Assembly: GCF_006345805.1 (NCBI RefSeq)
Contig: NW_021835988.1
Coordinates: forward strand, 1-64,000
Reading direction: 5' to 3'
Length of the DNA stretch: 64,000 bases
Source of the DNA: Octopus sinensis
Taxonomy: Eukaryota
Shown: positions 9,012 to 64,000 of the stretch, one piece after another
How the letters are laid out: each line of letters opens with the position of its first letter
Position numbering within the stretch: the first letter of the stretch is position 1
Position numbers and translations under genes: made by a program
The notes under the pieces: model-generated
What the model saw: the letters and a program-made list of their open reading frames with translations, nothing else
Database searches by the model: none
Told to the model about the DNA's origin: nothing

Positions 9012-12000
9012 CGTGGTTACTTGTTGTTGCTGTTTCTATTTTTATTATTTTTGTTATCATTTCATTATTCTATCATCTATTAATCTATCCTGTCGTTACC
9101 ATTCTATTAATCGTTCCTTTTCCTTTTTCTTTCGCTTTATTGCATCATTCTTTACATGGCAACTTGTTCCTCTTGTAAATCATCCAATTCCCGCAAGAAG
9201 GGCCGCTTGTGCTCCTCTTGCGATCTGTACTTCCATCTATCCTGCGTCGGGCTCTCCAGGGCCAGCTCGGCCGTTATCCAATGCTGGAAGTGCCCGAGTT
9301 GCCTTGGTCTACCCAAACGCATATCCCCAATTCCCGGGAGCCATTTTACCCCTTCTCAATTCCTCAAATCCTTATCTGCTTTCCGAAGCGAATCATTCAT
9401 CCCAGTAAGGATTCCAAAATCGGCCAGACCCACTGTGGCCAAGTCCCTCGCAGCCTTGATCGACCTGGCGCTGGCTTCCAGCGCCCCTGACCCTTGGTTC
9501 AAGCTGTTCTCTTTCTTTCCCGTTTGCCTCAATTCTTCTCCCATGCGCTCATGTGCTGCTAATCACGTTTCTTCTGCCCAGCGGATTAAAGACCGTTGTA
9601 CATCTTACGTCCACTCAGAGTTCAACTCTGATTGGCTGTCTGTCTCTCTTACGCCCCCTTGTAAGGAGGAACCCTCAAAACGGCCCGGTCTCGCAGAATT
9701 GCGCTTTTCCCGGGCAGTCCGAAGCAAACTCCTCCAGGGCGATATCTCTGGAGCAGTGCGCGTAATTTCATCCAACTCCTCCGTGGCTCCTCGGTGTGAT
9801 GCTGTCCTGAATCAACTCCGCAGCAAACACCCCCAAGCTCCCACCGACCTCCGTGCAACACCGACGTTAGTTTCGGCTCCGTCCAACCCGATAACCTCGT
9901 CTGAGGTTTCGGCCGCTCTCGGGTCTTTTGCGCCCAGTAGCAGCGGCGGGATAGACGGTGTTAAGCCCATCCACCTACGCGATCTCCTGAGCCCATTGAC
10001 CCACGCATCCGGAAAAGACCTGCTATCTTCTGTCACTCGTCTTTGTTCGCACATTGTCTCGGGCGAGATTCCAACCGTCGCCAGAGATCTTCTTTTCTCT
10101 GCTGGCCTCATTGCCCTGTCGAAAGCCGATGGTGGCGTGAGGCCCATTGTGGTCGGTAACGTTTTCAGGAGACTCTCGGCCAAGATAATGTCCCGCAGGG
10201 TGGTTCCCCCCCTGAGTCTGGAGTTTCTCCCTTTCCAGTACGGTGTCGGCGTCCAAGGTGCTTGCGAAATTCTCGCGCACGGCACTCGCCAACTTGTCCA
10301 GTCAAAGCCAGAAGACTGCAAGTTCATCGTGAAGCTGGACGTCAGCAACGCATTCAACTGCGTCCGCCGGGACCATCTGCTCGAAGTGGTCTCGGCACGT
10401 TGCCCCGTTCTCTTCCCAATTGTAAAGCTGGCATACTCTGCCCCAAGCTGCCTTCTGATCCATGATCAGATCATCATGTCAGAATGCGGCATTCAGCAGG
10501 GTGACCCACTGGGCCCATTGCTGTTTGCCCTCTCTGTTGACCACATTGCACGGAACCTTTCTTCCACTGTTAACTTCTGGTACCTGGACGACGTGACGAT
10601 TGGTGGACCTACAGAGGTCGTTATGGAAGACGTTAAGAGAATCACTTCCGGTTTCTCCAAGATCGGACTATCTCTTAACGGCGAAAAATGCGAACTCGTA
10701 AACATTTCTCTTGCCCCCGCCGCTCTCCGCAACACATTCTCCTCTCTCAGCAGCCTGATCGTTGGGTTAATGCTAACGCCCACCGGCGATCTAGTTATCT
10801 TGGGCTCTCCAATTTCCGCTGATGGCATAGAAAATGCCTTATCGTCTAAATGGGACGAAATTAAACTACTCACTGATCGGATCCGTGGGCTTGGCTCGCA
10901 TCTTGCGTTTTTCTTGTTGAAGAACTTTCTTTTCGTCCCCAGACTGACCTATATTCTCCGTTCTTCCCCGTGTTTCGCTGCCACAGACTCATTATCCAGA
11001 ATCGATAATCTTGTCCACCAATCGCTAACAATCCACCTCAATTTGAGGTTCACTGGTGACGGTTTTACCCGTGCCAGTTTACCAACTCGCTTCGGGGGGA
11101 TCGGGATCCGCTCTTGTGCGGACCTGGCCCTACCCTGCTATCTCTCATCCATGTCGGCTTCCAGGAATTCCGTTTGCTCAGTTCTACTTCCCTCTCTCGA
11201 ACTTAATGAGCTCTCGGAATTCTCATCTGCATGCCGTACGTGGTGCTCACTCGACCTTGATTTTCCCACGATCCCTTCAGTTCAAAGGGGCTGGGACGAA
11301 ATTCTCTGCTCGAACACATTACGAAAACTTCGCTCTAAGTCGGACCAACTCCAGCTGGCCACCCTTAACTGCGCCTGTCAGCCGCACACGGGTGACTGGC
11401 TCAAAGCTCTCCCCACTCCTAGTACGGGGTTACTACTGGACGACGAATCCTTGCGGATTGGGATCAGCTTACGATTGGGTTTGGACATCTGCCAGCCCCA
11501 CCCTTGCCGGTGCGGGTCCTCAATTTCGTCAAACGGCTTGCACGCCTTGTCGTGTAAGAAGAGTGCCGGGAGAATTCCCCGTCACACTCATCTGAATGAC
11601 GTTGTGAGGAGGGCTCTAGAGTCGGCTGGTTTCCCTTCCACCCTAGAGCCAGTCGGCCTTTCCCGGAGCGACGGCAAGCGTCCCGACGGGATGACGACCT
11701 TTCCTTTTAGGGAAGGCAAGTCCCTGGTTTGGGATGCCACGTGTGTCGACTCTTTTTCGACGACAATGCTTCCCAGGACTGTCGCAAACCCGGGTTCCGC
11801 CAGTGCGCTGGCTGAAGAGACAAAGATGACGAAATACCGGTGTATTTCGGACGCTTTTGAGTTTGCCCCCCTCGCCTTCGAAACCTCTGGAATCGTCGGA
11901 AAGGCTGCGACTCAACTCCTCACCGCCATTGGTAGAAAAATCTCCACAAAAACAAACGACCGGAGGGAGACGAGCTGACTGTTCCAGCGAATCTCGGTCG

Positions 12001-14339: not shown

Positions 14340-15200
14340 TTATATAAGAAATAACAATGAATATGATCAAATCAAGTCGATTCTCCATGGGATCGATGTA
14401 AAGACAAGAAATAGATATCAGGAAAGAAGGCTTTTGACCAAGTCAAAATCTTTTATTTAAATGACTGCCTTTATTATCGTGTTGAAAACGGGAGTCACAA
14501 ATTAGTTATTACTTCTGATGATCATGAAAAAATGAGAAGACTTTGTCAAGGAATTCACGAAGTTAGCCATTCCTGTCAAAATGAACTTGAGAGATTGTGT
14601 AGGCAAAGATTTTTTTTATTAAACGTGAAATCGTCCGTGATGTTGTTATCAACTGTGACATTTGCCGCTTTTCTGGACCTTTAAAGGACCATGATACAGA
14701 ATTTCATGTTTTGCTAATAAACCAAATGAAAGGTTTCAAATGGATTTAATCAATCTTAAAAGGTGCTTTTTCTGATTATTTTAGATTTTCGAGTTCCAAT
14801 GATTCTTTTTCATGGCTGTTAACTTGTATTGATGTATACAGCAAATATGGATTCACAAGAAAGCTAAAAAATAAATCTGGACTCGAGGTTTCAAAAAATA
14901 TTCAAGATATATTTATCGAGCATGGACCATCTCTATATCTAGAAACAGATAATGGGACAGAGTTCAAGAATTCTTACCTTACTGACTTGTGTGGAAAATA
15001 CAACATTCTCCAAATTCACGGAAGGCCTAACAATCCACGCAGTCAAGGGATCATTGAGCGTTTCAACCAAACGATTACGCGCAAAATCTCGAAAATGTTA
15101 TCTGAGGATAGTACCAAAAAGTGGATTAACTGTATTGGAGATGGCTCAAAAGATAAAATTCAAATTCATCGGCTTAAAAAGAAAATTAATTAAATTTTTT
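14340..15200 (+). mobile_element. rve-integrase (KRBA2/Ginger-like) gene remnant
   Basis: H2C2 region (IHEVSH..CDIC); D-D-E core RFQMDLI / ETDNGTEF / SQGIIERFNQT; 22-nt intron in LKR|FSS. Confidence 0.8.
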
Positions 15201-22639: not shown

Positions 22640-23455
22640 CAATTAGTAACATCCGAAATGTAGGTCAAAAGCAATCCTTCCAGCATAGAAGATTGCTTGA
22701 TCCGGGATATCGGCAGAGGTTGCAATCTATTGTGAGTAAAATAACACACCATAGGCTTCCTCACTGATTAGTGTTGCGTCTGGATCTATTTCTACACTTT
22801 TATCAGTTAATTTGATTTCTAGCTGATCTGTCACTGTCGCAATCCTTATATTTGAATATCTAAGTATACATTATGGGTTGGGACCCATTTGTGAATATGC
22901 ACATTTTCTGGCCGTCAAAAATACTACAAAGTCAGTAAGTTAAAATACCCCATGTAGAGGGGACGACTGATTTTTGGCCTCTGGAAAATGGTATTTGATG
23001 GCATGTCACTTTAATGTTAGAAAAAGATTTGTACATAGTTGATAATGGGACTAGACGTGCAAAGGCATCTACGTTCACGTAACGAAGGTCACTACAGTCA
23101 TACAGATCTCTAATGATTCAAAATATTTGAATGTACATATAGTCTAGGTCATTCAACCCGTCAAATGAGTTGTTTAGTATTCTCTTTAGCGAGTCTCCAC
23201 GACAGTAACTAGTGTTAATAAAATGTTGATTACAATGTCTTCAAGTTTGTTAAATTCGAGAATATTTCTCCATTTGGAAATTTAACGTTTTTATTAATTT
23301 CAATTGTTGTTGTATGTCCTGCAGCATTTGCTCCATTGAATTCACAGTTTTGCAAATTTCTAATTCAAATAAGCAATTTTTCAAAAACCGTCGTGTTAAG
23401 TCACAGTCACTTTGGACCACTAAGTCAACAAAAAGTAGGACAAGTAAAAGCATTC
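22640..23455 (-). pseudogene. Signal peptide plus LRR ectodomain, glycoprotein-hormone-receptor/LGR-like (copy 1)
   Basis: ILNNSFDGLNDLDYI|DLYDCSDLRYVNVDAFARLVPLST; 75-nt phase-2 exon between 27- and 26-nt introns, typical of LGR LRR exons; stops further on. Confidence 0.55.
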
Positions 23456-23879
23456 TAATTAAAGCTAATATTTTATTGCGAATAACTCATTGGTTAGACA
23501 ACAAATAAATTAAAAATTTTTAACTAAATCCAAAACCGAAAATAATAAGAAATTAAGTAATTATTGATCCTAGTTTTTGGAAATTTTTCTCATCTTGAGG
23601 GGACTCCATAACTCATTATTTCCACATTTACTTTCATGCTCAGAGTCATTTATAATTTGTCAATTTGTTTTATCTGGGGTTTTCGCATTATTAGTTTGTC
23701 ATTGCAAACAACTGCCGTGATGACTTCTTTATTAGGCATATTAATTCCCATTACTATGCTCCAGAACGATGCTTTCTATTTTTCATTACAAGTGCCAGAA
23801 TGTATGTTCTCGTCGGGCCTTGAACAAATAATCTTTCGATATAGGAGATAGAACACTTTGTAATACTTTTAAACCTACT

Positions 23880-26475: not shown

Positions 26476-29230
26476 TCATACACAGTCATACGCCTTATTT
26501 GCCTTTTTTAACTGCTTCTTAACCCAATTGACAGTCTTCTTGCCGTTGGGGGTGCATGTGAGCCGGTCGTTGGTCAACAGTTGGTTGACGGAGTCGAGGG
26601 CGAAGAGGGAGCGAGTTTGTGTGGAAAACATGCCCAACATGTCCCTAGGAGTGAGAAGGTGTGGACACCCCAATAGTCCGCACAAATTTTCGAGGGTGGA
26701 AATGTCGTAAATGGAAGAGTTGGCAGCGACGGAAGTGAGAAAGTCGAACAAGAAGGGGAGGTGTGGATTGAGGAGGGAAGAGTGTGATGCTGGTGGTTAA
26801 AGAACAAACCCGCGAGTCCCTGGACAATGCCGGTGTATGCCTGAATGCATGCTTCGTGTGTCTGTGAGAGGAGAGCGAGGCCTTGTTGTGTGGACTGGAA
26901 TGAGGAAAGGGAGGACTTGGTCGAACGAGGCGGAGGCAGCGGATTGGAGTGTGTCGAGGACGAGGGTGGCGAATGGGGCAAAGTGGTGGCCGAGTGACAA
27001 GGCCAAGTCCCCGAAGCCGGCCAAAATGACAGCCTTGAGTTTGTCGGAGGTGTGTGGACTCTGTGGAATAGTGAGGAGAGTTACGAGGAGGATATTCCAG
27101 AGAGAGGACATGAGAGGGTGTGCGTAGGGGAGGATGTGTTGAGGGGAGTTGATGTCGGCGAGGAGTGCCAGACAGGCGAACAAGACCTGTGATGGGGAGA
27201 GTGGAGAACCTGTTGGTCGTTGTGGGGTGTGAGGAGATTGAGCAAGAGGGGAGGATGGTGTGAGTGTTAGTATCGTCAAGAAAGGGAGAGAGGGCGTAAA
27301 GGGCGTCCTCGTGGACATGGTGGTGGGCGGGGGAGGAGAGGAAGGTGGAGAGGATGTGGAAGGCAGTGTCTGCGTGTGTGAGTTGTGAGAGGGGGAGGAG
27401 GAGGACAATGGACTGTGGTGATGGGGAGGAGTACTCTGATGAGTGCACAGAGGAGTGACTGTACGTGGAATTGATTGTCGAATTGGAGTGTATGTTGTAG
27501 GTATTGGACGATGAGAGGGAAGTAATGTGAGAGGACAGGAGACATGTCGGGGAGTATGTTGTGTGTGATCAGACAGATCAGAGTCTCGTAGTACACCGAG
27601 TCGTAGTGTGTAGTGCAGAGGCGAAAGAGTGCGTCGAACAGATGGTGAAAGTGTGGGGAGAGTGAGTGAGGGGCAGTGGAAGCAAGAGTGGAGAGTGCCT
27701 ACAAGTGAATAAGAATGGTAACGTAGCAGGCATTGGTGGCCACTCGTGGTTCGTGTGTGAGACACGTGCGGAGTGTGTGGGCAATGTGGTGGAAGGGGAG
27801 GTGGGGGACGTGCTCGCACAACTGGCCGAGTACCCAGACGACGGTGTCGCGGACTGCCACACTGGGGTCGGTAGTGGCGAGTGTGAGGAGGAGGGGGAGG
27901 ACGCGGAGGGCGTGTGGGGCAATGTTGTGGCGGACGACACAGCCTGGAGTGACACACAAACACGACCGAATGCCATCACGGCGGCCTCCCGCATATTCCA
28001 ATGGGCATGTCCGATGAACTGTTCTGCAAAGTGGAGGACGTGGGGGAGGATGTGGTCGTGGCAGCATTCGCTGAGGAGTGTGAGACAGACGGAGGCTGCT
28101 TTGGGGGGGATCCAGCAGCCGTCGGTGTCGTCATCCTCGTGTTGTTTGGGGAGGTGTGTGAGTATTGGGTATATAATGTGGGGCATGGCTGCCTGTGCGT
28201 ACAACTTGGACGAATGGGGGGAGGACAACTCCACCTCACAAATGCTCGACCAGAACTCGATTCCCTGGAGGACGTGTGACTCACTTTGGATGGCATTGAG
28301 CGTGATCTGTACATGTCATGTCCTCACTACCGGGAAGATCAAGTCGGCCATGTAGTCCTCCAAGTACTCGTAAAAGTGTGCGGCCATGACATCCAGGCAC
28401 TTGAGGGACATGTCGGCCACGTCCACGTCCGACGAGTGGCACGACTGGCAGACCACCTTCATTATCACGTCCCGCTCATTCTATCGTAGACCAGAGGAGG
28501 GGGACCTTGGCCTGCAGGAGGGGGACTGTCGAGTGGAGAGCCCTCAGTGCGGCCAATTGGATATATCCACTAAATAGGACAAACACCACTCACACACTCG
28601 CCTCCATTCCACGCACAATCGCACTCACCAACAAGTCCGTGTGTTGGGCCATGTACGAACAGTCCTGCACTATTACCACACACCACACCAGGTCATTCGC
28701 TATGAACCCCAGAGCCTCCAAACCGGCCTCCGTCACACGCCCCTCCATCACGTTGTTGCACAATAACACCACTCCCTCCTCCCACTCTCCAAACGCCATC
28801 TCCACACACGCCACCGCAGAATACACCATCGCCACACTGCTCGGTCTCCACCTCTCCTTTCCCAGTCCACACACAATCTGCCTCATTACTCACTCCTCAC
28901 ATTCCATTTTATCCTCTCACGCGCCCACTCTTCCTGCTCTCTCCACCGTTGCGCCAGCCACACACGCTTCTCACTGTTCACACTCCCAAATATTATATTC
29001 TTCAATTGGATGCACGCCTGTCTACATACTACCTCCTTGCTCTCCCCCTTTATTACTTCCGACAGCTCCAACATCACTTCCGTCTACACTTTACTCACAC
29101 CACCCACTAAATTCCTTTCACACGCCTCCTCCAGCACTTCCAGGCACTTCTTCACTTCACACGGGTCTACAACTTTACACAACACTCTACTTCCCAACAC
29201 TGATTGCTCCAACAACATTGACAGATCCAT
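26476..29230 (-). CDS. KPNB1: Importin subunit beta-1, about 15 introns of 20-25 nt
   Basis: MDLSMLLEQ; RQACIQLKN; LQGIEFWSSICE; WIPPKAASVCL; WNMREAAVMAFG; DPSVAVRDT; EPRVATNAC; VHEDAL; FGDLAL; AYTGIVQGL. One 1-nt frameshift at the G-run 27248-27251. Confidence 0.96.
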
Positions 29231-29270
29231 CACCACAATACACTCTATTTTATTCCCTCTTTTAATTCAT
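26480..29270. other. GC-rich island with a G-to-C strand-skew inversion at about 28.3-28.55 kb
   Basis: Hand counts per 60 nt on the plus strand: 27301 G34/C6; 27361 G30/C5; 28381 G19/C20; 28741 G4/C29; 29101 G4/C27. Confidence 0.95.
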
Positions 29271-29393
29271 CTAATTTAGCTAATTAATAATTACTCTCCA
29301 ATTTTTGTTTTCCGAGTTCCCCATGACTCCACTCTGATCGTCCTCGGCATTATCCTCAATCTCCTCCTGCAGTCTCTGGGTCTCTTAAGGGAC

Positions 29394-31961
29394 TTGCTGA
29401 TCTTCATTATATTTCCGCCAGTCCCTATTTACGGAATTTGCAGAGTCCAGGATTTCAGTGAAGCCATGTTTGTACTCGACAAACATGCTCTCCAGAGTGG
29501 CCTTCAGCGTTACAGTCTAGATGTAGGAACAAACACTTTCTTCAATCCCAAGTATTCCTATGCAACACGGCCTTTGATCACCCTGCTCGGCACAAGTCTA
29601 CCTGGACTGGCAGGAGACGTGGTGAAGACGGGAACTATGTGCCGATCTACAACCAAATTGGCTACATTGTGTGTCGCCAAAGAGACACATGGCTTCTACA
29701 AGACTCTCGTTCTTACGGGGGCTCGGTCGTCGACAGTGACCACAAGATAGTCATCGGCAGATTCAATCTGAAGAAATTATATGTGCTGGATAAAACAAAT
29801 TGTCAACTCCCTCATAAATCGGACAGATACTTGACAGAAAAACTGGCTCCCTCACTATCGACTCGAAACTTCTATAAATCATCCATCGATGAATCCCTTA
29901 AAGACATGGAAACTGGACTTATGCCTTCAGCCGCTTGGAAGGCAATGTCAGCCAACATTCACTCGGCGGCAAATAAATATGTTGGAAAGCAGCCAAAAAA
30001 TACGCACTCTATCGGACTGTGTCACCCGGATACTCTTGCCTTGTCAGCTGTGCAAAAGGAGCTTAAGCTGAGGACTGAGAACACCAAAGATATGGATACC
30101 AAACTCGCACTGAAAGGCCGGCGTGCTGCCATCCAAAAAAAAATAAAGACCCTAAACCTCCAATATGGCCGGGATATCCTGGCTTCCCGTTTTGGAGAAC
30201 TGGAAACCCTCAAAGATAATCCACGCACATTTATGGCTTTACGGTTGCTTAAGAGGAAGAAAAACTGCCCCAAACTTCGACTCCAAACCAGTAATGGAGT
30301 TCAAATATCTGACCCGGGAGAACAGGTGGGAGTCATTGCGGACTATTTTTGAACAACGATTTAACGCTAACACCGAACAAATCTCGCCTTTCTCTGGCCC
30401 AGCACGACGACTGAAGAATACAATCTCCTTGAAGGAAGTTACAAAGGCTGTTAGCAGGCTCAAGAATAACCGAGCTGCGGGTCCGGACAACATTAATGCG
30501 GAGCTGCTGAAATACGGGCCCGAATCTCTTCTATGCAACATCACGAACATCCTCAACAATATGTTTGCTACAAATGACTCACTACCGCTGGGCTCTGGAG
30601 TTCTCATCCCTATTCAAAAGCCGAACAAACCTCTTGGTCCAGTAGAAAATCTCCGCCCAGTTATTTTGCTAAACTCCCTGAGGAAGGTTCTCTCGCTGAT
30701 TGTGCTGGATCGTATTGGAGACAAAGTCAATGACTTTCTGTCACCGAGTCACAGCGGATTCAGAGAAGGACGTTCAACCGCAGATGTTCTTTGGGGCCAC
30801 CGATTGCGGTGTGCAACCCACCAAAGATACAAAAGTGCCACGAGAATCCTGGGTATCGATATGTCAAGAGCTTTTGATTCCATCAATCGCGATCTCCTCA
30901 TGAGGGTTCTACGGAGTTTCTTAAATGAAGATGCTATCAGAATGATACAGGTCTTATTGGCAAAAACGGACCTCACTGTTCGCCTTGGGACAACGTCGTC
31001 CAGATCCTTCCCAACAAATGTGGGAACCCCCCAAGGAAACTCTCTCTCGCCTCTGTTATTTGTGATCTACCTTGAGGCTGCTTTACGAGAGCTGAGAGGT
31101 CTATATGACAAGTCAATAACTGAAGTGATTTACGCTGACGACGTCGACTTTGTGTCCACTGACAAATCCGCCCTACTCAGACTATTGGAGATTGCACCGG
31201 ATAAACTTGGAGAATGGTTCTCACCAAGTAATGATCCTAAGACTGACGTGGTCGATGTATCACGTTCGGATACCCAAACTATGGAAAAATGGAGACTTTC
31301 GAAGAAGCTTGGCTCTCTGCTTGGAGACCGAGAAGACATCATGCGGAGAAAGATACTGGCCGCTGTTGCTCTAAAATCCGTCATGAAAGATTGGCTACGA
31401 TATTGTCCCGAGAACCTATCACTACGTTCTAGAATCTACAACGCTTTTGTCAAACCGGTGCTATTGTACAACTCATCTACATGGGACATCTCTGACACCG
31501 AACTAAAGAATCTTGACTCGTTTCACAGAAAACAGCTTCGCGTCCTAAATGGTCTGCATTGGCCTAAGAAAATTAACAACTCATTGCTCTACAAACTCAG
31601 TAACTCGGTGCCAGTCAGCCAGGACATCATAGATGGCCGCTGGAGGCTCTTCGGACACTTCCTGAGAATGGACCCGTCCTCACCTGCTTACCAAGCCATG
31701 GAAGAGTACTTTCTCTCGGATAGCCCAAAGTTTCGCGGACGTCCCCGCACAACACTGCCGGTTGCGCTGGAACACGATCTGAAACACGTGGGCAAAACCC
31801 TGAAAAATGCGAGGACTTGGACGAACTGCGATGCCTTGCACAAAACCGCAGAGGATGGCAAACGATGGTTAATAAGATTGTATCGGGTGTGGCACGTGTG
31901 GGAATATAACTCTTTCCTTTCCTTGTTTATGTTCCTACGGAAGTGCTAATAATAATAATAA
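29394..31961 (+). mobile_element. RTE-clade LINE (partial APE plus RT), near-intact
   Basis: YNQIGYIV..DSRSYGGSVVDSDHKIV; RAAGPDNI; DMSRAFDS; GTPQGNSLSPLLF; YADD; RGRPRTTL; (TAA)5 tail. Frameshifts are single-nucleotide. Confidence 0.9.
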
Positions 31962-32269
31962 TTGAAGATGTGATTTATGGTTAATTAAGAATGAAAAAGT
32001 TTGAATGATCAGGATAATATAAATTTGATTAGGTATGTTATCATTATTATTATTAATAGTACGTACACATAACCAAAGAAATGTTAAATTAGCTAAGGTC
32101 CCATTTGTGCCGCACGTTGAGAAATCTTGTTCACCAGGCGTCTCCACCGGGGCCTGCTTTATACTCGTAGGTCTTCAAGGTCGTCAGTACATCGAGTTTT
32201 CTTCCAATTCCGTTGAGATTCTTGTTTAGTGCAACAGGGAGAGTAACTTGGGCCTTTCTCTGAACTGTG

Positions 32270-35369: not shown

Positions 35370-35900
35370 TGATCCAACGTGACTGTGACTTAACACAAAT
35401 GTTTGGAAAAATCACTTAGGGCTTTAGATACCGTGATTTCATTGGAGAATGTTGCGAGACATTCAAAATTAATCTTAATTCAACATGACGTTGCATTTCC
35501 CTTTGGAAAGACATTCTCCAAATTACAAACATTCTTTTTTATTTCTGTTCTTTTAATCATTACAAAATTGAAACATTTGTAATCAACATTTTATCTAATA
35601 CCCGTTACTGTATCTGAAACTCAGTACAGAAAATACCAGAAAACTCATTTAATGTCGTGAATGTAAATGCCTATGCACGTCTTATCAGTTTAAAGCTCTG
35701 CACAAATCTTATTTTAAAATTACAGTTACATGCCTAAGTATGACATTATTCAGTGGCCACAAATCAGTCATTCCCTACCATAATGTATTTTAAATTACTC
35801 ACTGTGTACTTTTGATGAGATCTATAAAATGTGCAATATTCCAATGGAGCCCGACCCACAATATATACTTAGACATTTTAATATAAGGAATACGAAAAAT
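35370..35900 (+). pseudogene. LGR-like LRR gene, copy 3 (more decayed)
   Basis: gtgactgtgacttaaca...gtgaatgtaaatgcctatgcacgtct... matches copies 1 and 2. Confidence 0.5.
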
Positions 35901-35939
35901 TATTTAAAAATATATAAAATCCAATAAATAAAAATTAAT

Positions 35940-36996
35940 TCAATTTGAAATACGTCCAATGTGGTCTTGTATAACATTAATTGCAAATTTTCTTATATTA
36001 ACGCAAATCTTTGACTTTAGTGGGAATTCTTCTTTACATTTCTCACTAATCTCCAAAAAATACAAACTAAACATTTTAATACAACAAAACCTGCAATTCT
36101 CCACAGAAATACAAGCCACCCTTGCCTGCTCCTTCACACTCTCATAGGCCTCCTCTAAACTGTCCATGTCCTCCAACTGCCCGACCACGGTCTCCGCAAA
36201 TTTAACAGCTTCCATAAGACTCTACTAAGTGACCTCAGTCCCTCACATCTACCGAGTACTTGTGCTTAAAATCAGTCCCTTCACTGCTCTCGTTTAACGT
36301 CCTGACACGTTTGCTGATAAACTGTCGACAAATGTCACAAATTCGGATTGAATTGACTTTATATTTGTCGTTGAAATCGACTTGGATTTGAGATTTTGAA
36401 CAGTCAGGCCAATCCATATAAACTGTGGTGAAACATTCTGCGGAATTAAACTCTCAAATCTGCCTGCGTCGTCGTAGGATATAAAAAAACAGCATTTCGA
36501 ACAGATTATGTAACCACAGACTCTGCAATGGTGTCGTCGGTTTATGAAATTGTAGGTTTTTTTACAGCAATAACAATTTGAAGACATTTTGTCATCGATC
36601 CAAGGCACAGTGGATTTTTCAACCTCCAAAGCCTTGGTTTTTGACAGTCCTCGGTCCCCCGTTGCCTCTCGGAGACCAGCAAGAAGTCGAGAAAGTCTCC
36701 AAATCAGTTTGGCGTTGGCTTCTTTGTTTTTTCCGTGTTTTTCACGGAGGTTTTTGAGTAAAGAAGTATCGTCCTTCATTAGGCCTATAATTCTGGTTGG
36801 TTTAGTGGAGACCTATTTTTTGGGGTTTTATTTTTTGTGGATTGGAGGATTGTTCTTCAAAGTCTATGAGTTAGTCAATGTGGGATAGACTGGTAATGGG
36901 GTCATTGTGGGTGTTTAGAAAGTGTGATGTTAATTCGTTTTCATTATTAAACTTTTTATGACATGAAGGACAAAGAAATCCTTCTTTTGGTGGCAT
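35940..36996 (-). CDS. RBSN: Rabenosyn-5 (C2H2 plus FYVE), C-terminally short
   Basis: MPPKEGFLCPSCH..H..H; KLIWRL; EKSTVPWIDD..CYCC..RRHHCRVCG..CSKC; RICDIC; 27-28-nt introns. Confidence 0.9.
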
Positions 36997-37199
36997 CCAC
37001 AATGAAATAAATTATTTATTAATGTATTATTTTATATTAAATAATCTTTATTTAATAATATGTCGACTTTTAGAAAAATATTAATCTTTCTATTGATGCT
37101 TACGATCAGTAAATAATACATTTTTCTTCTAAAGTACCTTTTATTTAATATTGTGAATTACTCGATGTTTTTGAAATCTATATTTAGCTTGTATGAAAT

Positions 37200-55999: not shown

Positions 56000-58179
56000 G
56001 AGGACGCATTAATTAGTTCAATTGACAAATAATTAGTCTTTATTATTCAACTTTTCGATATAAAAATGCAATGATCATTTAATTGTCAAAATTATATTAC
56101 AATTTTCTAATCCAATTCCAAAAAATTTCACAAATTTCGTTAATTTGAACAAATACTACGCAATATATTATTTTTAACTGATTTGAATATTAATTTATTG
56201 AAAGCTACAAAAATTATTTCATGCTACATATAACTTTTATTTCATGTTTGTAAGCTGAATCTTCATTTATTAAAATTAAATACTATACAGAACTGTATTT
56301 TATACATAATTTTGTCATAGATTCATTTAAAAAATTCATTTATAGTTTAATAAAAGTATTCTAGATCTGGATATTGGGAAACTACAAAGATCTGGATATC
56401 GTTAGACACCTTTACCGTCTTTTGGGATTGCGATGAGTAGTAGATTTGTCAGTAATAAACTATTAAAGAATTTTTCATTAGGCGTAGTTTATATTTAATA
56501 TTTTATTTAATTTACAGTTATAACTAAAATTCAATAAAAATAGGATCACATGTTTAGTTTATCTTGTGTAGAGTTTGCTATCTCCACAGTGTCGATTATT
56601 TTGTCACTTCCATAACTGGCATATATTGTACGAATATTATAACTATATTCAAACATTCTATCATTTAATACAGCCGAAAACACAGCACTAATTTAACTTA
56701 GTGCCGCTAATATCGGCAAATATTATTGAACATTACTTTTATGTTCAACATTATGAGACGCTGTTAAATATTATGACTAAAAATTTCTTGAAAATGGTCA
56801 TACTATTGGGAGTGTTCAATTTTATTAAGGCGGAGTCCAATAATCTTACTAGAAATTTTTCAAGCTTATTTTTAAAAAGAAAATTTGTTTGTACATTAAA
56901 AGTTTGAATTCTTTTTAATTTTTCATGTAGTTTGGTGATATGAATCTTCATATTTTTGCTTCTTTCACGAGTGAAAGGTTTCAGCTAAATTTTTGTAGAT
57001 TGGAAAAGGTTTTCAGCTTTAAATTATGATTAAAAATGGATTTTAGCAGTTATCGATTTTATGGTAGGTTAGTAGGTTTATTCAGATTTGCATTTGTCAG
57101 ACCACATTTTCATAATTTTTCAAAAGAAGTATGCAACAATTTAAGATCGCATTTCTACCTACATGGACGTTGCAAAATTTTGCAATCGGATAATGGCTAA
57201 GAATTCAAAAATGTGTCTCTAAAAAATCTTTGTGAAGAGTTCAACATAGTTAGAGTTCACCGCTTATTCCTCGATATCTTTTGAAAGGACCATTTGGGTA
57301 AAGAAATGTACAGGGGATGTAAAACCACAAAGCTTATTACGTAAAAATGATGGTATCGAAGCAAATAGGTGGAATTTTTACCTTCATTGAATTATCGAAA
57401 AGAATGAAAACTTACTCTGTTCATGTCATCATTTGATAAAAATTATATAACGATAATGTGATGTTACACATTTCATGTATACATATGTCCAAAATAACAA
57501 ATTACAACTTTTCGTCGCAGGCAAAATGATGTGGAGTCTAAGCACTATAGTCAGGAATATGGCAAAGTGTGCTTTTATATTTATCCCATAACTCTCCATA
57601 AATCCACATCGGCGATGTCAACTGTGTCCAGAGTGTGGTTATCTTGACGATATTCTCTCCACGGGAGGTAATATGCAGGGATTATCATGGATTCACTTAA
57701 TGCTGCCTGCACTCAGTCGAATTGGCGGTGTTCCTCTCAATTTTCTCTTATTGGGGGAAATTAGGGATGTCTGCGCTGATTTACTCTCAGTCTTTTGATA
57801 ATTAAACCGTCTCTGCTTCACTAGTTGTATCAATTAGGACGCGATGACACACCAATTTCATTAAGTTTTAAATTTTCATGATTTTCCTAGTGTTTTTTCT
57901 CCCGCTTACACCACAAATTGCTAATGATCTTTATTTATTTTATCAATTTTGTCGAAAATCTCTTATATTGTGGAGCCATTCTTTTCATTGCTTAAATCAG
58001 TAGAAGATTACACTTATTGAATGTCCATAGTACTCCTCATGTTTGCAATGCGGTTGACCTATGATCGAAATTTGGGTGGAATCGTCCTCCAGGTTTGTCC
58101 AAGTGGGAGGGATGTGCAGTGCATGAATAAGTGATAAAAAAAACAAGTTCTACTCGTAGTAAAACTGCTGTCAAAAGCA

Positions 58180-61100
58180 TTAATAGGGGGGGCAGGCATA
58201 TATGTGAATTCTTCCATCAAGATCGGCGACAGCCAGATTGTTCTAACGTAGATAGATAAAGCAACATTTCCCTCGTAGAAAGCAATGCGAGTGTTCTTGG
58301 CGAATTTGATGCAACGCGTCTTTAAGAACTTCATGTGTCTACAATTTATAAACTGAATGGAGGAATCTTGACTAGAACTGAATATTATGACATCCTGATC
58401 AACCAGGCCAGCAGGTTAAATGTAGAATGATATGCAGAACATGAAATACTCACGGGAAATTTAAATTTGTCGACGCAGCGTGTGAGCTGAGAATCATAGG
58501 AGGAAATCTGTCCGTTCTGTTTTAAAACATAAGTATAAACACATACAGTACACACATCAATGGGATGACATGGGAAGAGTCAAATACAATCAACGAGACA
58601 GGAGAATCCCCCACTTTCTTGATTTTGGAGGGCCAAGAACTAATTTATGACAGCAAACGTGGTAAATTTGGTGCGCAAGTCATATAACAGCATATTGCCC
58701 GTGGAAGTGCCAACAACGAGAGTTTTAGTCCCAAATTCGTCAAAAGCCATGCAAGTGACGAGACAGTGAGCAACATCCAAATTCTACTCGCACTGCCAGA
58801 CAAACGACAACCTCGTGAAAAAGTTCAGTCTCCAGATTCCACATTGAAATGCTTTGTTTATGAGAGATGGCCAGTAAACCACACGACTGACTCCAGGATG
58901 AAAGAACATTCATTTCCTCGCCTACAAACAAACAAGTACAACTCGAGGCAGCCATCCATGACCGGACGCGCTCATAAGTGGGGTTGCCGCGATATACACA
59001 AACAATGTGGTTATCTGACTACATTAATGCAATGCACTGACGAGATATTGTCAGCAAGTGGGCATTGTCGTGCTCGTTTATAATTTCCAAACAAGAAATG
59101 TCTGATTCCGAGGATATTATGTGGTTCAGTGCTCCCTTCCTGTCCATCACACTACCCCAATGAACAAGTGAGGTATACCTAATTTCAGTCCCATCGTACA
59201 CTATGAATAGTTCTGACGTGAATTTGTTGTATTTTAACAATATACGACACTCCTTTGTCACGGACAGCGTCAACGATTTAGTTTTCTTGAAAGAGGAATA
59301 ATCTGCCCATCAGAAACCTCAGTAATACCGTCAAAAATACAATTCTGGAATTTAAAGGACAAGAAAGATCTGATTTGGTGTTCTTTATCTTTATTGCACA
59401 AACGACATTGGTTGATTAAGGACGCGGTGTTGAAGCTGGGGCGGACAAACTCGTCAATAAGTTTATCGAACAAGTCCAATTTTTGAGAGACACGATTGAA
59501 TTCGGTTTTGACGGACTTAATAAGCATTAAGCGTACCTCCGGGTTGGTCATCGAGTTTTCATAGAGGGAGACAATGGCGAGTATAATTTCCGTTTCGGGG
59601 GTGGTTGTTTGAGGAAAATTAAGTTTCTTCCCAAATTCTAGGCATTTCTTCAAAAAGTAAAAAATCAATCCCCGTCGATCTGGATCTTCCGAGGGAGCTA
59701 GGAAACAAGGAAGATAGGCGATGAGTATTCCACCCACCAAGAATAATGACTCCTACAACTCCTAATGAAGCACATACAAGTTGATTGAGGAAACAAATTT
59801 CTTTATAGTAGACAGTCCGAGCAGTATCGACTGCCTTGTTGAGAGATTGGAGTGTGTTTAGACACATGTCCGCCCGCGAGTCGCAGTCAACCAGAATTGA
59901 TCGAATGGAGTACATCGCCACTGACCTGATCTTGTCGTAATTCACCACGATATACCAGAAAACAGGAATCCTTCACGAGCTGACAAAGTTGGTAGATCGC
60001 ATCCAATTTGAGGGCGACTGATTGACGGTATTTGCTTTTCTGGCATATCTAAAGTGAGTTTGACAGTAAACACTTTGGCGAGCAAGAAGAGGTATACCAA
60101 CAAATATTGGCGATCGGCGGATCGTAAATAGTCGAGGCACACGTCGATTACATCCCTGGCATTAATGAAATACTACAGTCACGAGGAGGGGCTAACCTGG
60201 TTGGAGGGCATGGCACTTGCCAAAATAGCCAGGAAATAGGCCGAATATGCCCTGATTTCCGGGGAGGAGGCACCACGCAAATTGCAAATAAAAAGCTTGT
60301 AGAAATCGTCATTCATGCAGGCCTGGCGCGTTTTCTAAAGGAAATAATAAGTGAGAGAGTGCATTATCCGCTCTGAGCAGTTTTCCCCAAATATAAAATA
60401 GTTTTCTCTGCAGCTCATTCTCTGCCACCGGCAATAAGTGGATGAGATAACTGGAAAACCCCACGGCCACCACCTCACAAGTAGGGAAAATAACAACCTT
60501 ATGAACTTGCTCCTCGCCCATTGTCTCGACGTAGTCTGCAAGAGCACAGATAGCCCGAGTGCGGTTGGTTTGAACCAAAATGGCCCGCAATGTCAGAAAT
60601 GTGCAAACCTGGAGCATTGCCGGCAACAGTTGTCCGTTGTTTCGGTGAAGTTGAGTGTAAGCCTGGAACGACGTGATCACTTTATCAAAAAAATCATTCC
60701 CAATGGTTATCCCTTCGGAACTTTCTCCCTCTTTTAGGAAAGAGATTGCTTCGTCGAGGACAGAGTGCCAGAGATTCCACAGGTTGTGAGTTTTGGTGTA
60801 GGGGAGTGAGGGGACTGAGACAGGGTGGGCATCCAGACAGCCCAGAATGTGAGTGGCCAGCATATAATTCCTAAATAGACAGGAGGAGAGAATATCCCCT
60901 CTGAACAATTTGGTGAACTGGGCTGAATTGAATCCCCACGGCAACCTGGAGGAAGAAGGTCGAATGCAATGCAGTCTTGAATGGCCGTGAGAATCCACTG
61001 CAGTTGTCGTGCAGAGTCTTCCGGTCTTTCGGGCTGCCGGCCAGTCTATGTGAGTGAAGTGAATGCAATACTCGACTGGCAGGAACTCCCCCTGGGACGG

Positions 61101-61907
61101 GTGCCTGCTCCACATTTGACTAATAATGGGAAGCGAGGTCGTACAAATTGAGGGACAGCAGCACTGGCGATAAAAGACAGCACGTGAACAAGTCGGCGGG
61201 GAGTCCCTCAGCGCGAGGAAGTGACTCGCCGTGTGAGCAAGCAGCGAAATGAATAAACTCCTTATCAGGGAATGAGTTCTGAATGGGCCAGGAGGACTAA
61301 CCTGGAAACGACTGACGATGGTGGCTGCAGATGACGTGTCGAATATGAAAATGGACGGGGCCTTGAGGTGTTCCACCATCAGCTCGTTGTCCACCTCGAC
61401 CATCCGCCCCCTGTCGACGACCCACATCTTGTCAGAGGGAGGCAGATTAACTCCACAGTAGTGGAAGACTGCCCAGTTGTCCTAATGCGTCTGCATTGCC
61501 CCAATCACCCCAATGTGCTTCCTCGACTCTGCGCATTTGTTGAGGAGTGACGGCAGGTCAGGATTAGTCAGGGCCTCGAATACTGTCCCTCTGTTGTCGA
61601 GAGTCCGGTAGAGTCCTTTCAGTCTCTTGGCAATATCTCTGAAGGTGTAGAACGGGAATCTCACACGGACATCTGCAGTGTGGTGGGCAGATTAACCAAT
61701 CCAAGTGAAGAGGGGGCAGATATCTATGACTAGTTCGTTCAGCTCGTCCTCCCTGTCAATGTCGTGATTGAGCACTGCGATGACGCTCAGAGTTCTTCTC
61801 TGTTGATAATATTACATTCCCACCTGCTCAGAGTGGCCACTCTCACGAATTACAGTCTCCTTCCATAGTTCTACTATGTAATTCACATATGACTCCACAA
61901 TGTTCAT
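58180..61907 (-). CDS. RPTOR: Raptor (regulatory-associated protein of mTOR), divergent and compact
   Basis: RRTLSV..FTWID; AVFHYCG; PSIFIFDTSSA; FTKLFRGDILSSCLFRNYMLA..PVSVPSLP..HNLWNLW; WD40 LEIINEHDNAHLL, WSQSCGLL, LAVADLDGRIHIY; 23-27-nt introns. Confidence 0.92.
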
Positions 61908-62943
61908 TTATTTATAACATTCTAATTATTTATTATTTAAGACAGTAGAAAAGTCTCAAGAAATAAGTGCCGTCAGATGCAGGCAACTCAAAGACAGTTT
62001 GGGCGAATTGAGATCACTTACAGAGAAAGATGAATAAACTAATATTGTTTCTTCGAGTGCTGCACATGCGGGTGTTGCACATGCGGGGATATAAACAAAG
62101 TGCCATAAGACAAGTCTCCATTCCTCACCAGACGGAGATAACTAAACTCAAACCAAATGGGCATTTCACTGGTGGATCTGACATGGTAGGTTCGTAACTT
62201 TCAGGACCGCGTCAAGTTATAATAATTGCAGAGCAGAAGATGGAGAGACCTCAGCATCTGGTTATGCCTTCATGTGTAATCATGGTAAAGCATACTCCCG
62301 CACTCCGTGACTCTCGTCTTTTACCGTGATTACACTGTTTCCGTTGACTATTAAAAAATTCCTATCCCGCCAATATGAGAATAATTCTTCTGGTTGGGAG
62401 AGTTATTCTGCCACGTTGACGACGATAATAGTCACTGTGTGGGTTTTCCAGGCAGCAAAAAAGAGTCTTGTGAAGACTTTAAAGTATTTATTAGGGATTC
62501 CCTCTGAAGTTTGATCAATTCCTTCACATTAATTTGAATGGCACTTGGACCATACTTGCCGACACGTAGCTTTTGTGGTCCCAAGGTGTGCACCACGCGC
62601 TTTTTTAACAGCAAAGAGGGCAGCCTTCCTTTGGGATACACTTGACTCACTCCACAAAGTGTCGTCCATCTTGGTAAGAATTCTTTTACTTAAGTAGACA
62701 ATGTTAGTTATTCCACGTCCTAGCTGTTCGCAAGACAAGTATAATCTCTATTTTTTGTCAACACAATAAGGTCTATTTCATCACACTCACTTGGCTTGAA
62801 TTCGATCATACCAATGTAGTAGTTTAGGGAATCGGCTCCTGCAGTGAGAAGGATGGGCAAAGAATAATCCTCAACCCAGCATGTGGACATGACCGAATTG
62901 ACATGCGACTAGGATAATGCGCAAGTTGGCAACCATTGGAGTA

Positions 62944-64000
62944 CAGTACGACCCCGGTTTGGGGCAGACCCCATGGGTGGGGCACCCTCGGGTTTTGGGG
63001 CACCCCCGCTTTTAGGGGCAGTTTTTGAAAACAGTAAATTTTTCATTCTATTATTTATTTTTGATGACCCCGGTTTGGGGCACTTATTTAATTTATTTAA
63101 TTACAAAATGTTAGTTTATTTATTAATTATTAATTAATACTATTATTTCACGTGTTTATTTTGACTTTAGTATGGTTCGTAAAAAGAATTCAAAGATTAA
63201 TTATGAAACAAAAATTAAAATCGCTAAAGATATAAAACATGGTCAATTTTCAGAAAGAGATCTTGCTAAAAAGTATAAAACGAGCAAAGGTATCTTTTTT
63301 AACTAATTATTAATTACAGGTACTATTTCTCGCATTAAACAAAATTTTGTTTATTATTTTGACGCGGGATTAACTGAATCCGATAGAATCAAGGAATCAC
63401 ATGATCCAAATAATGAATTAGATAGATTAGTTTTTGAAACTTTTCTACGTCTGAGAGATGAATTTCTTCCAATTTCTGGAACTATCTTAAAACTGATTGC
63501 AAAAAAATTATCTAAAAAGATAAATTATGAATCATTTAAGGCATCAAATGGATGGCTAGACCGGTTCAAGAAAAGACACGAGTTGCTATTTAAAACTATA
63601 AGTGGAGAAAAGAATTCATCTGACCTTTCTACGGTTTCCAATTTTTTTGCTGATTATGACAACTGTTTGGAAACTGTAGGAAGTGAAAATATTTTTAACT
63701 GTGATGAAACAGCTTTATACATAAAGCGAACGCCGTCGAAATCTTTTGTTCAATTTAATGACAAATGCAATGGAATTAAAATGAGCAAAGAGAAAGTTAC
63801 CCTTCTCCTTTGTTGTAATGCACTTGGTGAAAAGTTAAAACCTCTATTAATTGGAAAATTCAAATCTCCTAGGTGTTTAAAAAATTTTAACGCAGAGGAT
63901 CACGGAGTACTATATGCTGCATCAAAAAATTCGTGGATGACTAGTGATATTTTTGGGAAATGGTTATGGAAAGTAAATCAAGATATGATCAATGAAAAGA
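62944..64000 (+). mobile_element. pogo/Tigger DNA transposon, left part (runs off the window)
   Basis: TA|CAGTACG terminus; repeated (c)ggtttggggca-like subterminal motifs at 62955-63020 and 63070-63082. Confidence 0.9.
63172..64000 (+). CDS. Tigger/pogo transposase (HTH, CENP-B HTH, DDE_1), open to the window end
   Basis: FKASNGWLDRFKKRH; IFNCDETAL; KEKVTLLLCCNALGEKLKPLLIGK; NSWMTSDIF; 30-nt intron at 63290-63319. Confidence 0.9.

Follow-up and report, generated by a model that had tools for sequence, protein, structure and literature searches.

A G/C strand-skew flip inside an importin-beta gene on a micro-intron contig of the Octopus sinensis assembly

The stretch of DNA analysed here (the window) comprises the first 64,000 nucleotides of contig NW_021835988.1 in the Octopus sinensis assembly GCF_006345805.1, and its central feature is an importin-beta gene on the minus strand, in the middle of which the G/C strand skew of the DNA changes sign. 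The features of the locus are collected in Table 1. Translated searches (tblastn) returned pieces that keep the order of metazoan importin-beta between residue 1 and about residue 876, running straight across the point at which the skew flips. The predicted protein aligns to arthropod, rotifer and cestode importin-beta at 31% identity and 97-98% coverage (E = 1e-90), a myxozoan importin being only 26% identical, and Pfam identified TPR_IMB1 (2e-39, residues 429-774) together with HEAT_EZ, HEAT and HEAT_2. The N-terminal IBN_N domain (PF03810), the Ran-binding region that is located in the G-rich part of the gene, was not detected at E <= 0.001; residues 1-95 align to the N-termini of orthologues at 27-32% identity. 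Judged by these matches the gene is a divergent importin-beta1.

The gene model was guided by homology and by further copies of the gene elsewhere in the assembly. An approach using minimal-intron dynamic programming was abandoned because the C-rich frames are free of stop codons. The introns measure 20-37 nt in the window copy; in the consensus of five copies they measure 22-25 nt, with one of 37 nt, and this consensus is an uninterrupted frame of 804 amino acids. The window copy is frameshifted in exon 10, probably through a homopolymer assembly error. The first-pass annotation had described one intact importin-beta gene running through the locus on the minus strand. The gene does run through, and it is intact in the consensus and broken in the window copy. 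Known RNA families were searched for in the 24-32 kb region of the window and none was found.

Table 1. Positions of the importin-beta gene, its introns, the composition zones and the adjoining retrotransposon in the window
Feature	Position	Strand	Description
Importin-beta1 (KPNB1/Kap95-type) gene	26476..29230	-	15 exons, 14 GT..AG micro-introns; ATG at 29230, stop at 26476
G zone	28601..29300	-	coding strand G 40%, C 9%, A 26%, T 24%; starts ~70 nt upstream of ATG
Unskewed centre	28201..28600	-	coding strand G 28%, C 27%, A 20%, T 25%
C zone	26601..28200	-	coding strand C 41%, G 15%, A 20%, T 24%; ends ~120 nt before stop codon
Intron 1	29084..29107	-	24 nt; inner bases G10 C0
Intron 2	28878..28900	-	23 nt; G9 C1
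Intron 3	28665..28688	-	24 nt; G9 C1
Intron 4	28570..28593	-	24 nt; G6 C2
Intron 5	28481..28505	-	25 nt; G3 C10
Intron 6	28307..28330	-	24 nt; G6 C3
Intron 7	27944..27966	-	23 nt; G5 C5
Intron 8	27699..27722	-	24 nt; G1 C5
Intron 9	27370..27406	-	37 nt; G1 C20; least certain boundary, picked because it keeps the frame
Intron 10	27187..27209	-	23 nt; G0 C11
Intron 11	27061..27084	-	24 nt; G0 C9
Intron 12	26895..26916	-	22 nt; G0 C11
Intron 13	26790..26809	-	window copy 20 nt, remaining four copies 23 nt; GCC indel
Intron 14	26645..26668	-	24 nt; G1 C10
One-base (C) deficit	27242..27262	-	C-run at ~27250-27255; the C is present in the other four copies; exon 10 frame shifted
LINE-type retrotransposon	29553..32000	+	reverse transcriptase open reading frame 30156-31949; begins 323 nt upstream of ATG

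The block containing the gene (26480-29270) has a GC content of 54.2%, compared with 38.1% for the whole window. Measured in 200-nt windows, the plus-strand GC skew runs from +0.41 to +0.72 across 26600-27900, is close to zero across 28200-28600 and lies between -0.50 and -0.70 across 28600-29300. The AT skew stays within about +/-0.2 across the same island, with A and T roughly equal in both arms. To place these values we took a further 415 windows of 1 kb from this contig (standard deviation, SD, 0.091; maximum absolute skew 0.32), against which the two arms of the island have z scores of +5.5 and -5.0. On the coding strand the cumulative excess of G over C peaks at 28541, and the centre of approximately 400 nt is flanked by arms of about 0.7 kb (G zone) and 1.6 kb (C zone), the latter with a brief balanced interruption at 27901-28000. 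The skew falls to zero within 1-2 kb, and the last ~120 nt of the coding sequence and both flanks are of ordinary composition. The order, positive and then negative, is identical when read from either strand. The flip is real and very unusual. The five 60-nt counts from which it was originally noticed were reproduced exactly (G34/C6 at 27301, G30/C5 at 27361, G19/C20 at 28381, G4/C29 at 28741 and G4/C27 at 29101), as were the GC-rich block on an AT-rich background and the balance of A and T; the two micro-introns quoted as following the flip (29107-29084 and 26916-26895) are both real and do so.

The skew is present in the untranslated region (UTR), the introns and the fourfold degenerate sites alike. 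At third codon positions G makes up 56% and C 6% of codons 1-150 (skew +0.73 to +0.87). Across codons 201-300 the two are about equal (G21/C22 and G18/C23, skew close to 0) and the GC content at third positions (GC3) reaches 82-86%, the highest in the gene. Across codons 301-750 C rises to approximately 60% and G falls to approximately 10% (skew -0.56 to -0.93). The 54 nt around the start codon contain no C at all. Seen from the coding strand, the G zone is 66% purine and the C zone 65% pyrimidine. Runs of GGG number 37 on the template strand of the C zone and 11 on the coding strand of the G zone, and neither strand of the island contains a canonical G-quadruplex motif. Because third positions and introns follow the skew of the zone in which they lie, we conclude that the cause acts on nucleotides and not on the protein, and that C and G have essentially been exchanged, A and T having changed little. 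The observed-to-expected ratio of CpG in the arms is an unremarkable 0.8-0.9, on which ground CpG depletion or methylation was rejected as the cause.

The protein has followed the DNA. In the G zone valine increases from 5.9 to 12.6% and glutamate from 8.1 to 13.2%, and in the C zone histidine increases from 1.7 to 9.1% and leucine from 12.6 to 17.0%, with glutamate, lysine and glycine depleted. We also considered whether the divergence of the protein is focused in the skewed arms, and rejected this: the ratio of its identity to inter-metazoan identity is 0.56-0.61 in all zones, which makes the whole protein a long branch.

Within the part of the contig surveyed, the pattern is confined to this gene and its tandem copy. 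We surveyed 216 kb of the 455-kb contig (C12459) for runs of 300-nt windows with an absolute skew of at least 0.45 extending over more than 0.8 kb, excluding C12459:176001-224000, which is 48 kb of N. No run qualified outside the importin gene and its tandem copy, and the further skew islands that the first-pass annotation had proposed to look for were therefore not present in this part of the contig. A composition-based DNA search for other C-rich, G-poor regions recovered the five gene copies and one fragment only, with a method that is insensitive to composition. Among the neighbouring genes, the Raptor, FYVE, WD40 and FAT-like open reading frames (ORFs) have third-position skews of -0.25 to +0.06 without a trend from G at the 5' end to C at the 3' end, and the GC3 of neighbouring genes is 0.36-0.55 compared with 0.58-0.86 in the importin gene. 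Given these ordinary skews, the suggestion that gene-sized units of repair or replication might be at work is not supported. A weaker skew pair, in the opposite order on the coding strand, lies at window 35900-37100 over the FYVE zinc-finger gene (ORF 36294-36812, minus strand), where the plus-strand skew measures -0.42 over 35.9-36.4 kb and +0.37 over 36.7-37.1 kb; these values come from small counts, the GC content being low.

The contig on which the gene lies does not belong to the genome of the chromosomes. The assembly amounts to 2.72 Gb spread over 13,516 contigs. An importin-beta gene of the host itself (KPNB1) lies on a 30-Mb chromosome (C22:24124000-24133999). This gene is split into at least 10 small exons over 10 kb with a spacing of 0.1-2 kb, its exons being mostly 64-90% identical to bird KPNB1 (one weak terminal match is 53% identical). 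Exon GC is approximately 0.43, the introns are AT-rich and the skew is ordinary. The window also carries the gene for Raptor, a subunit of mTORC1 (58000-63000, minus strand), whose GT..AG introns of 23 nt include those immediately downstream of 61305 and 60947, and whose composition is ordinary (GC3 0.45-0.52). The match between these introns and those of the importin gene, together with the separate host genes, places the island and its flanks in one genome, distinct from that of the chromosomes. A long interspersed nuclear element (LINE) of the window has copies of 99% identity on small contigs only. Two of the contigs bearing it, C7755 and C9497, also have matches to HSP70, the match on C7755 being a single one with in-frame stops inside it. 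On the sister small contigs C8703 and C9082 the HSP70 pieces are spaced by about 21-30 nt, and the chromosomes hold a separate HSP70 set. The first-pass annotation had taken the locus for part of the assembly's own genome, a view that the second, micro-intron organism and the normal KPNB1 of the host overturn.

Among animals, introns this short have been reported only for dicyemids and myxobolid myxozoans (PMC13644364). The median intron of Dicyema sp. is 27 bp (PMC6543705) and the introns of D. japonicum are similarly short (PMC13644364). Dicyema japonicum, whose host is Octopus sinensis, has a genome of 36.7% GC of which 49% is repeats rich in LINEs (PMC6736024). In the importin gene, the Raptor gene and the HSP70 pieces the introns are mostly shorter than 30 nt, and the window, at 38% GC, contains several LINE reverse transcriptase (RT) ORFs and belongs to a set of small contigs apart from the chromosomes. 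The best named relative of the window RT comes from Octopus sinensis records. The search of the protein collection turned up no dicyemid importin (best matches 31%), and it is from the introns, the GC content, the LINEs and the RT, not from a named dicyemid sequence, that we infer the contig to be dicyemid-like and the host octopus-like. The assembly thus appears to contain two animals, one with cephalopod-type chromosomes and the other a micro-intron, LINE-rich and AT-rich organism on contigs of up to ~0.7 Mb. The division between the two apparent organisms runs between the chromosomes C1-C22 and the small contigs C499-C13496. For annotators of the assembly this matters, as genes annotated on the parasite contigs would be misassigned to the host.

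There are five copies of the 3.2-kb importin gene, 98.2-99.4% identical in DNA and distributed over four contigs: two lie on the window contig in a tandem segmental duplication and one on each of three small contigs. The skew profile is the same in all five. No further paralogue was found, and the parasite therefore has only this gene for importin-beta1. The tandem duplication extends over ~65 kb (window 1-64000 against C12459:80237-150133) in blocks of 94-99% identity with different transposon insertions, and one patch of it, 22682-23681, is 4-6% diverged. Within the island the tandem copies differ by 0.2-0.4%, compared with ~1.2% in the flanks, which fits either purifying selection or conversion between copies. 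Each copy has one or more single-base indels of its own. Some 32 single-base indel columns separate the five copies (the window and L010-L013), many of them in homopolymers, with L012 and L013 the worst affected. These look like errors of an unpolished long-read assembly, and they would break gene models on these contigs.

Mobile elements surround the gene. Homology to the other gene copies ends at 29552, and the sequence beyond, beginning with the retrotransposon of Table 1, is specific to the window copy. An intact LINE RT ORF of 955 amino acids lies at window 9111-11978 (plus strand); more than 20 copies with 98-99% identity on other small contigs suggest that this LINE was recently active. 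There is a second LINE family at ~75% identity. Further transposon-type ORFs on the plus strand include a pogo/Tigger-like DDE transposase that runs off the end of the window (63307-63999) and those at 14750-15193 and 1370-1894, the types represented being integrase core and LINE C-terminal domains. The genome is repeat-rich.

A sixth, degenerate copy gives some indication of how the C zone has changed. This pseudogene fragment (C2292:148521-148982, ~83% identity) corresponds to window 27891-27494, within the C zone, and is joined after ~30 nt to the 3' flank of the gene through an internal deletion of ~1.1 kb. The fragment has a weaker C skew than the gene. C/G transversions account for 18 of the 51 substitutions between the two and fall at all codon positions and in an intron; at 17 sites in this part of the C zone the gene has C and the fragment G, compared with one site in reverse. 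The gene has histidine at codons 421 and 429 (GAC>CAC), where the fragment retains the acidic residue of the outgroups. By these comparisons C/G transversions have been unusually common in the history of the importin gene family. Among singletons in the five copies, C>T outnumbers T>C by 12 to 1 in the C zone and G>A outnumbers A>G by 3 to 1 in the G zone. The recent singletons are mostly strong-to-weak, as expected for unfixed mutations, and some may be assembly errors.

Three kinds of process would each give a positive arm followed by a negative one: a central break with resection, convergent transcription and a replication terminus. We tentatively put the first of these in the lead, namely that the locus may be a long-lived site of double-strand-break (DSB) repair or recombination centred at about 28.2-28.6 kb. 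At each break, 5'-to-3' resection would leave opposite strands single-stranded on either side, and cytosines lost or damaged on the exposed strand would be bypassed to give C>G. In this way C would give way chiefly to G, the coding strand being affected in the 5' arm and the template strand in the 3' arm. GC would be driven up by conversion tracts about the centre, and would be raised over the whole gene at the level of the DNA. In human hotspots, single-stranded DNA (ssDNA) is found on the forward strand at the DSB's left side and on the reverse strand at its right side, over 1-2 kb per side. Mutations of the C>N class are strand-asymmetric in the flanking 2 kb, C>G has off-centre peaks, the centre is symmetric, and there is also an A>N asymmetry (PMC7615360). 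The resection polarity argued in the first-pass annotation is correct by these data. At the importin locus the forward strand is poor in C left of the centre and the reverse strand is poor in C right of it, the centre (28201-28600) is strand-symmetric with G at 28% and C at 27%, and silent-site GC is locally raised, as gene conversion biased towards GC would have it. The geometry of a hotspot is consistent with the combination of polarity, a symmetric core of maximal GC, kilobase-scale arms, C/G transversions and confinement to a single locus. It is also conceivable, and we put this a step lower, that the site is a stable, PRDM9-independent hotspot of a dicyemid, with its resection polarity fossilised as base composition in the animal's only importin-beta gene.

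Several observations weigh against a break hotspot. Breaks and recombination here are unproven: we infer them, with the resection and the bypass chemistry, from base composition and the comparison of sequences. The original proposal of a long-lived break or recombination site is partly supported, in that the polarity, the geometry and the class of mutation fit it. The A>N asymmetry of the human hotspots is missing, A and T being about equal in both arms. The arms are unequal (0.7 and 1.6 kb), and the pattern was seen at a single locus. The skewed domain, from ~70 nt before the ATG to ~120 nt before the stop codon, approximates the transcription unit, a match that a hotspot would make by coincidence only. 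Polarisation of the substitutions is mixed, as at codon 420 the gene keeps the conserved proline and the fragment has glycine (CC>GG). The present mutation spectrum wears the skew down, and to explain it one would need either a bias in fixation or an episode in the past. The check on polarised substitutions that had been proposed for this site has thus come out divided, with the 17:1 excess of C/G differences in the C zone on one side and the mixed outgroup direction and the erosive recent transitions on the other. An APOBEC-type deaminase as the source of the changes is not supported, as there is no TC/GA context and the 3' neighbours of the changed G are mixed.

A bias linked to transcription would account for the match between the domain and the transcription unit at least as naturally, and is the leading alternative, possible if somewhat doubtful. 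Here a sense transcription start site (TSS) at ~29.3 kb and an antisense TSS at ~26.6 kb would set up G-rich non-template zones that converge, or the phases of RNA polymerase II would differ in their mutation regime. The start of the domain, ~70 nt upstream of the ATG, is a place at which a TSS would be expected, and the domain stays within the transcription unit; the skew shared by UTR, introns and fourfold sites and the GGG runs of both zones are in keeping with such an origin. Intragenic reversal of GC skew tied to transcription is moreover documented in unicellular fungi, where the coding strand is C-biased at the 5' end and G-biased at the 3' end and where fourfold sites, UTRs and amino-acid usage are affected (PMC3315797). 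However, the sign at the importin gene is opposite to that in the fungi and the amplitude is larger by about an order of magnitude; we found neither the order of C before G nor a presence across most genes, the four neighbours being without any such 5'-to-3' trend. Sense transcripts also cross the C zone, so a dominant antisense promoter would be needed, which is unproven. In addition the C zone ends inside the last exon and not at the end of the transcript, and canonical G-quadruplex motifs are lacking.

Selection on the RNA or protein seems unlikely. Under this explanation the messenger RNA or its precursor would be kept purine-rich at its 5' end and pyrimidine-rich at its 3' end for folding, for pairing between the two ends, for recognition of the micro-introns or for translation. 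The purine and pyrimidine partition of the two zones agrees with this, as does the fact that this is the parasite's only importin-beta1 and is intact in the consensus; the erosion of the skew by recent mutations would imply that something maintains it. Yet complementarity between the arms is short and at the level of composition (14-27 nt at 70-93%), the shifts towards histidine and valine look like a cost and not a target, and the micro-introns of Raptor are of the same size without the skew.

That the gene contains a replication landmark at its middle, whether a fixed origin or a fixed terminus, is very improbable. A sharp change in the sign of the GC skew is typical of fixed origins and termini, and under the bacterial and human convention a positive-to-negative change would mark a terminus. 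The jump at an origin goes from negative to positive, so the replication origin offered as an alternative in the first-pass annotation has the wrong sign under the usual convention, and the coupled AT skew is missing as well. Replication-associated skew jumps, as at bacterial ori and ter and in human N-domains, are weak in nuclear genomes, coupled to a TA skew and spread over tens to hundreds of kilobases. An amplitude of +/-0.7 is far above known nuclear replication skews, and the importin skew decays within 1-2 kb and does not extend over a replicon.

An assembly artefact, whether a chimeric join, an inversion or foreign DNA in host sequence, can be dismissed almost entirely: although the contig does come from an organism other than that of the chromosomes and the single-base indels in the copies are typical of long-read errors, the five copies on four contigs agree in their skew profile, the protein is collinear across the flip, there is no inverted repeat and the 23-nt introns of Raptor tie the flanks to the island. 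A chimeric join is ruled out by the concordant copies and the collinear protein, and the idea that a palindrome or inverted duplication caused the flip was rejected, the only matches found being composition-level ones of 14-27 nt.

Strand asymmetries in nuclear DNA are normally weak statistical signals. Here an essential gene carries a near-saturated asymmetry with a flip, and the protein has paid for it, with histidine up approximately fivefold and valine approximately twofold in their respective arms. We came across no earlier account of a nuclear gene whose G/C skew is fixed, is near saturation and changes sign within it. The genome papers on Dicyema japonicum and Dicyema sp. do not mention skew, and in the literature we found none linking recombination hotspots to a fixed strand-skew flip, the 'GC skew' of the gerbil papers denoting GC richness. 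Whichever process is responsible, nature has here run to its end state an experiment that asks how strongly a local strand-specific bias can reshape a housekeeping gene, and the locus provides a search image for similar sites that needs nothing but sequence. Were the site a fossilised hotspot, the position of the hotspot, the length of resection and the chemistry of bypass could all be read from the sequence, and any genome could be scanned for islands of this kind.

Several known systems resemble the importin island in part. With the skew jumps of replication it shares an abrupt change of sign in the GC skew, although the sign is that of a terminus and not of an origin. GC skew associated with R-loops is known at CpG-island promoters and in immunoglobulin switch regions. 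As in those regions, the G zone has a G-rich, C-poor non-template strand just downstream of the likely TSS. In contrast, the 3' 1.6 kb of the importin gene is C-rich on the non-template strand, which R-loops of the sense strand cannot explain. The skew of fungal genes (PMC3315797) is alike in its change of sign within genes, in its reach into fourfold sites, UTRs and amino acids and in being ascribed to mutational regimes rather than to selection on the protein. It differs in that its order is reversed and that it is weak and genome-wide, whereas the importin skew is extreme and restricted to one gene family in 216 kb.

Runaway GC-biased gene conversion, as in the Pdx1 region of gerbils and the sand rat (PMC6573468, PMC7403616), has likewise produced a local GC-rich island in an essential, conserved gene and dragged its amino acids along. 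There, however, G and C are raised symmetrically on both strands, and on its own such conversion predicts neither a strand skew nor a flip. Another close system is the strand-asymmetric mutagenesis around human meiotic DSB hotspots described by Hinch et al. 2023 (PMC7615360), with which we group the clustered, strand-coordinated C>G mutations seen on resected ssDNA. In the human hotspots the signal is one of de novo mutation rate at short-lived PRDM9 sites, without a visible effect on base composition; at the importin island, where the breaks are putative and the A>N asymmetry is lacking, it would be a fixed and near-saturated composition in an essential gene. What the two have in common is the polarity, the symmetric centre, the kilobase scale and the prominence of C>G.

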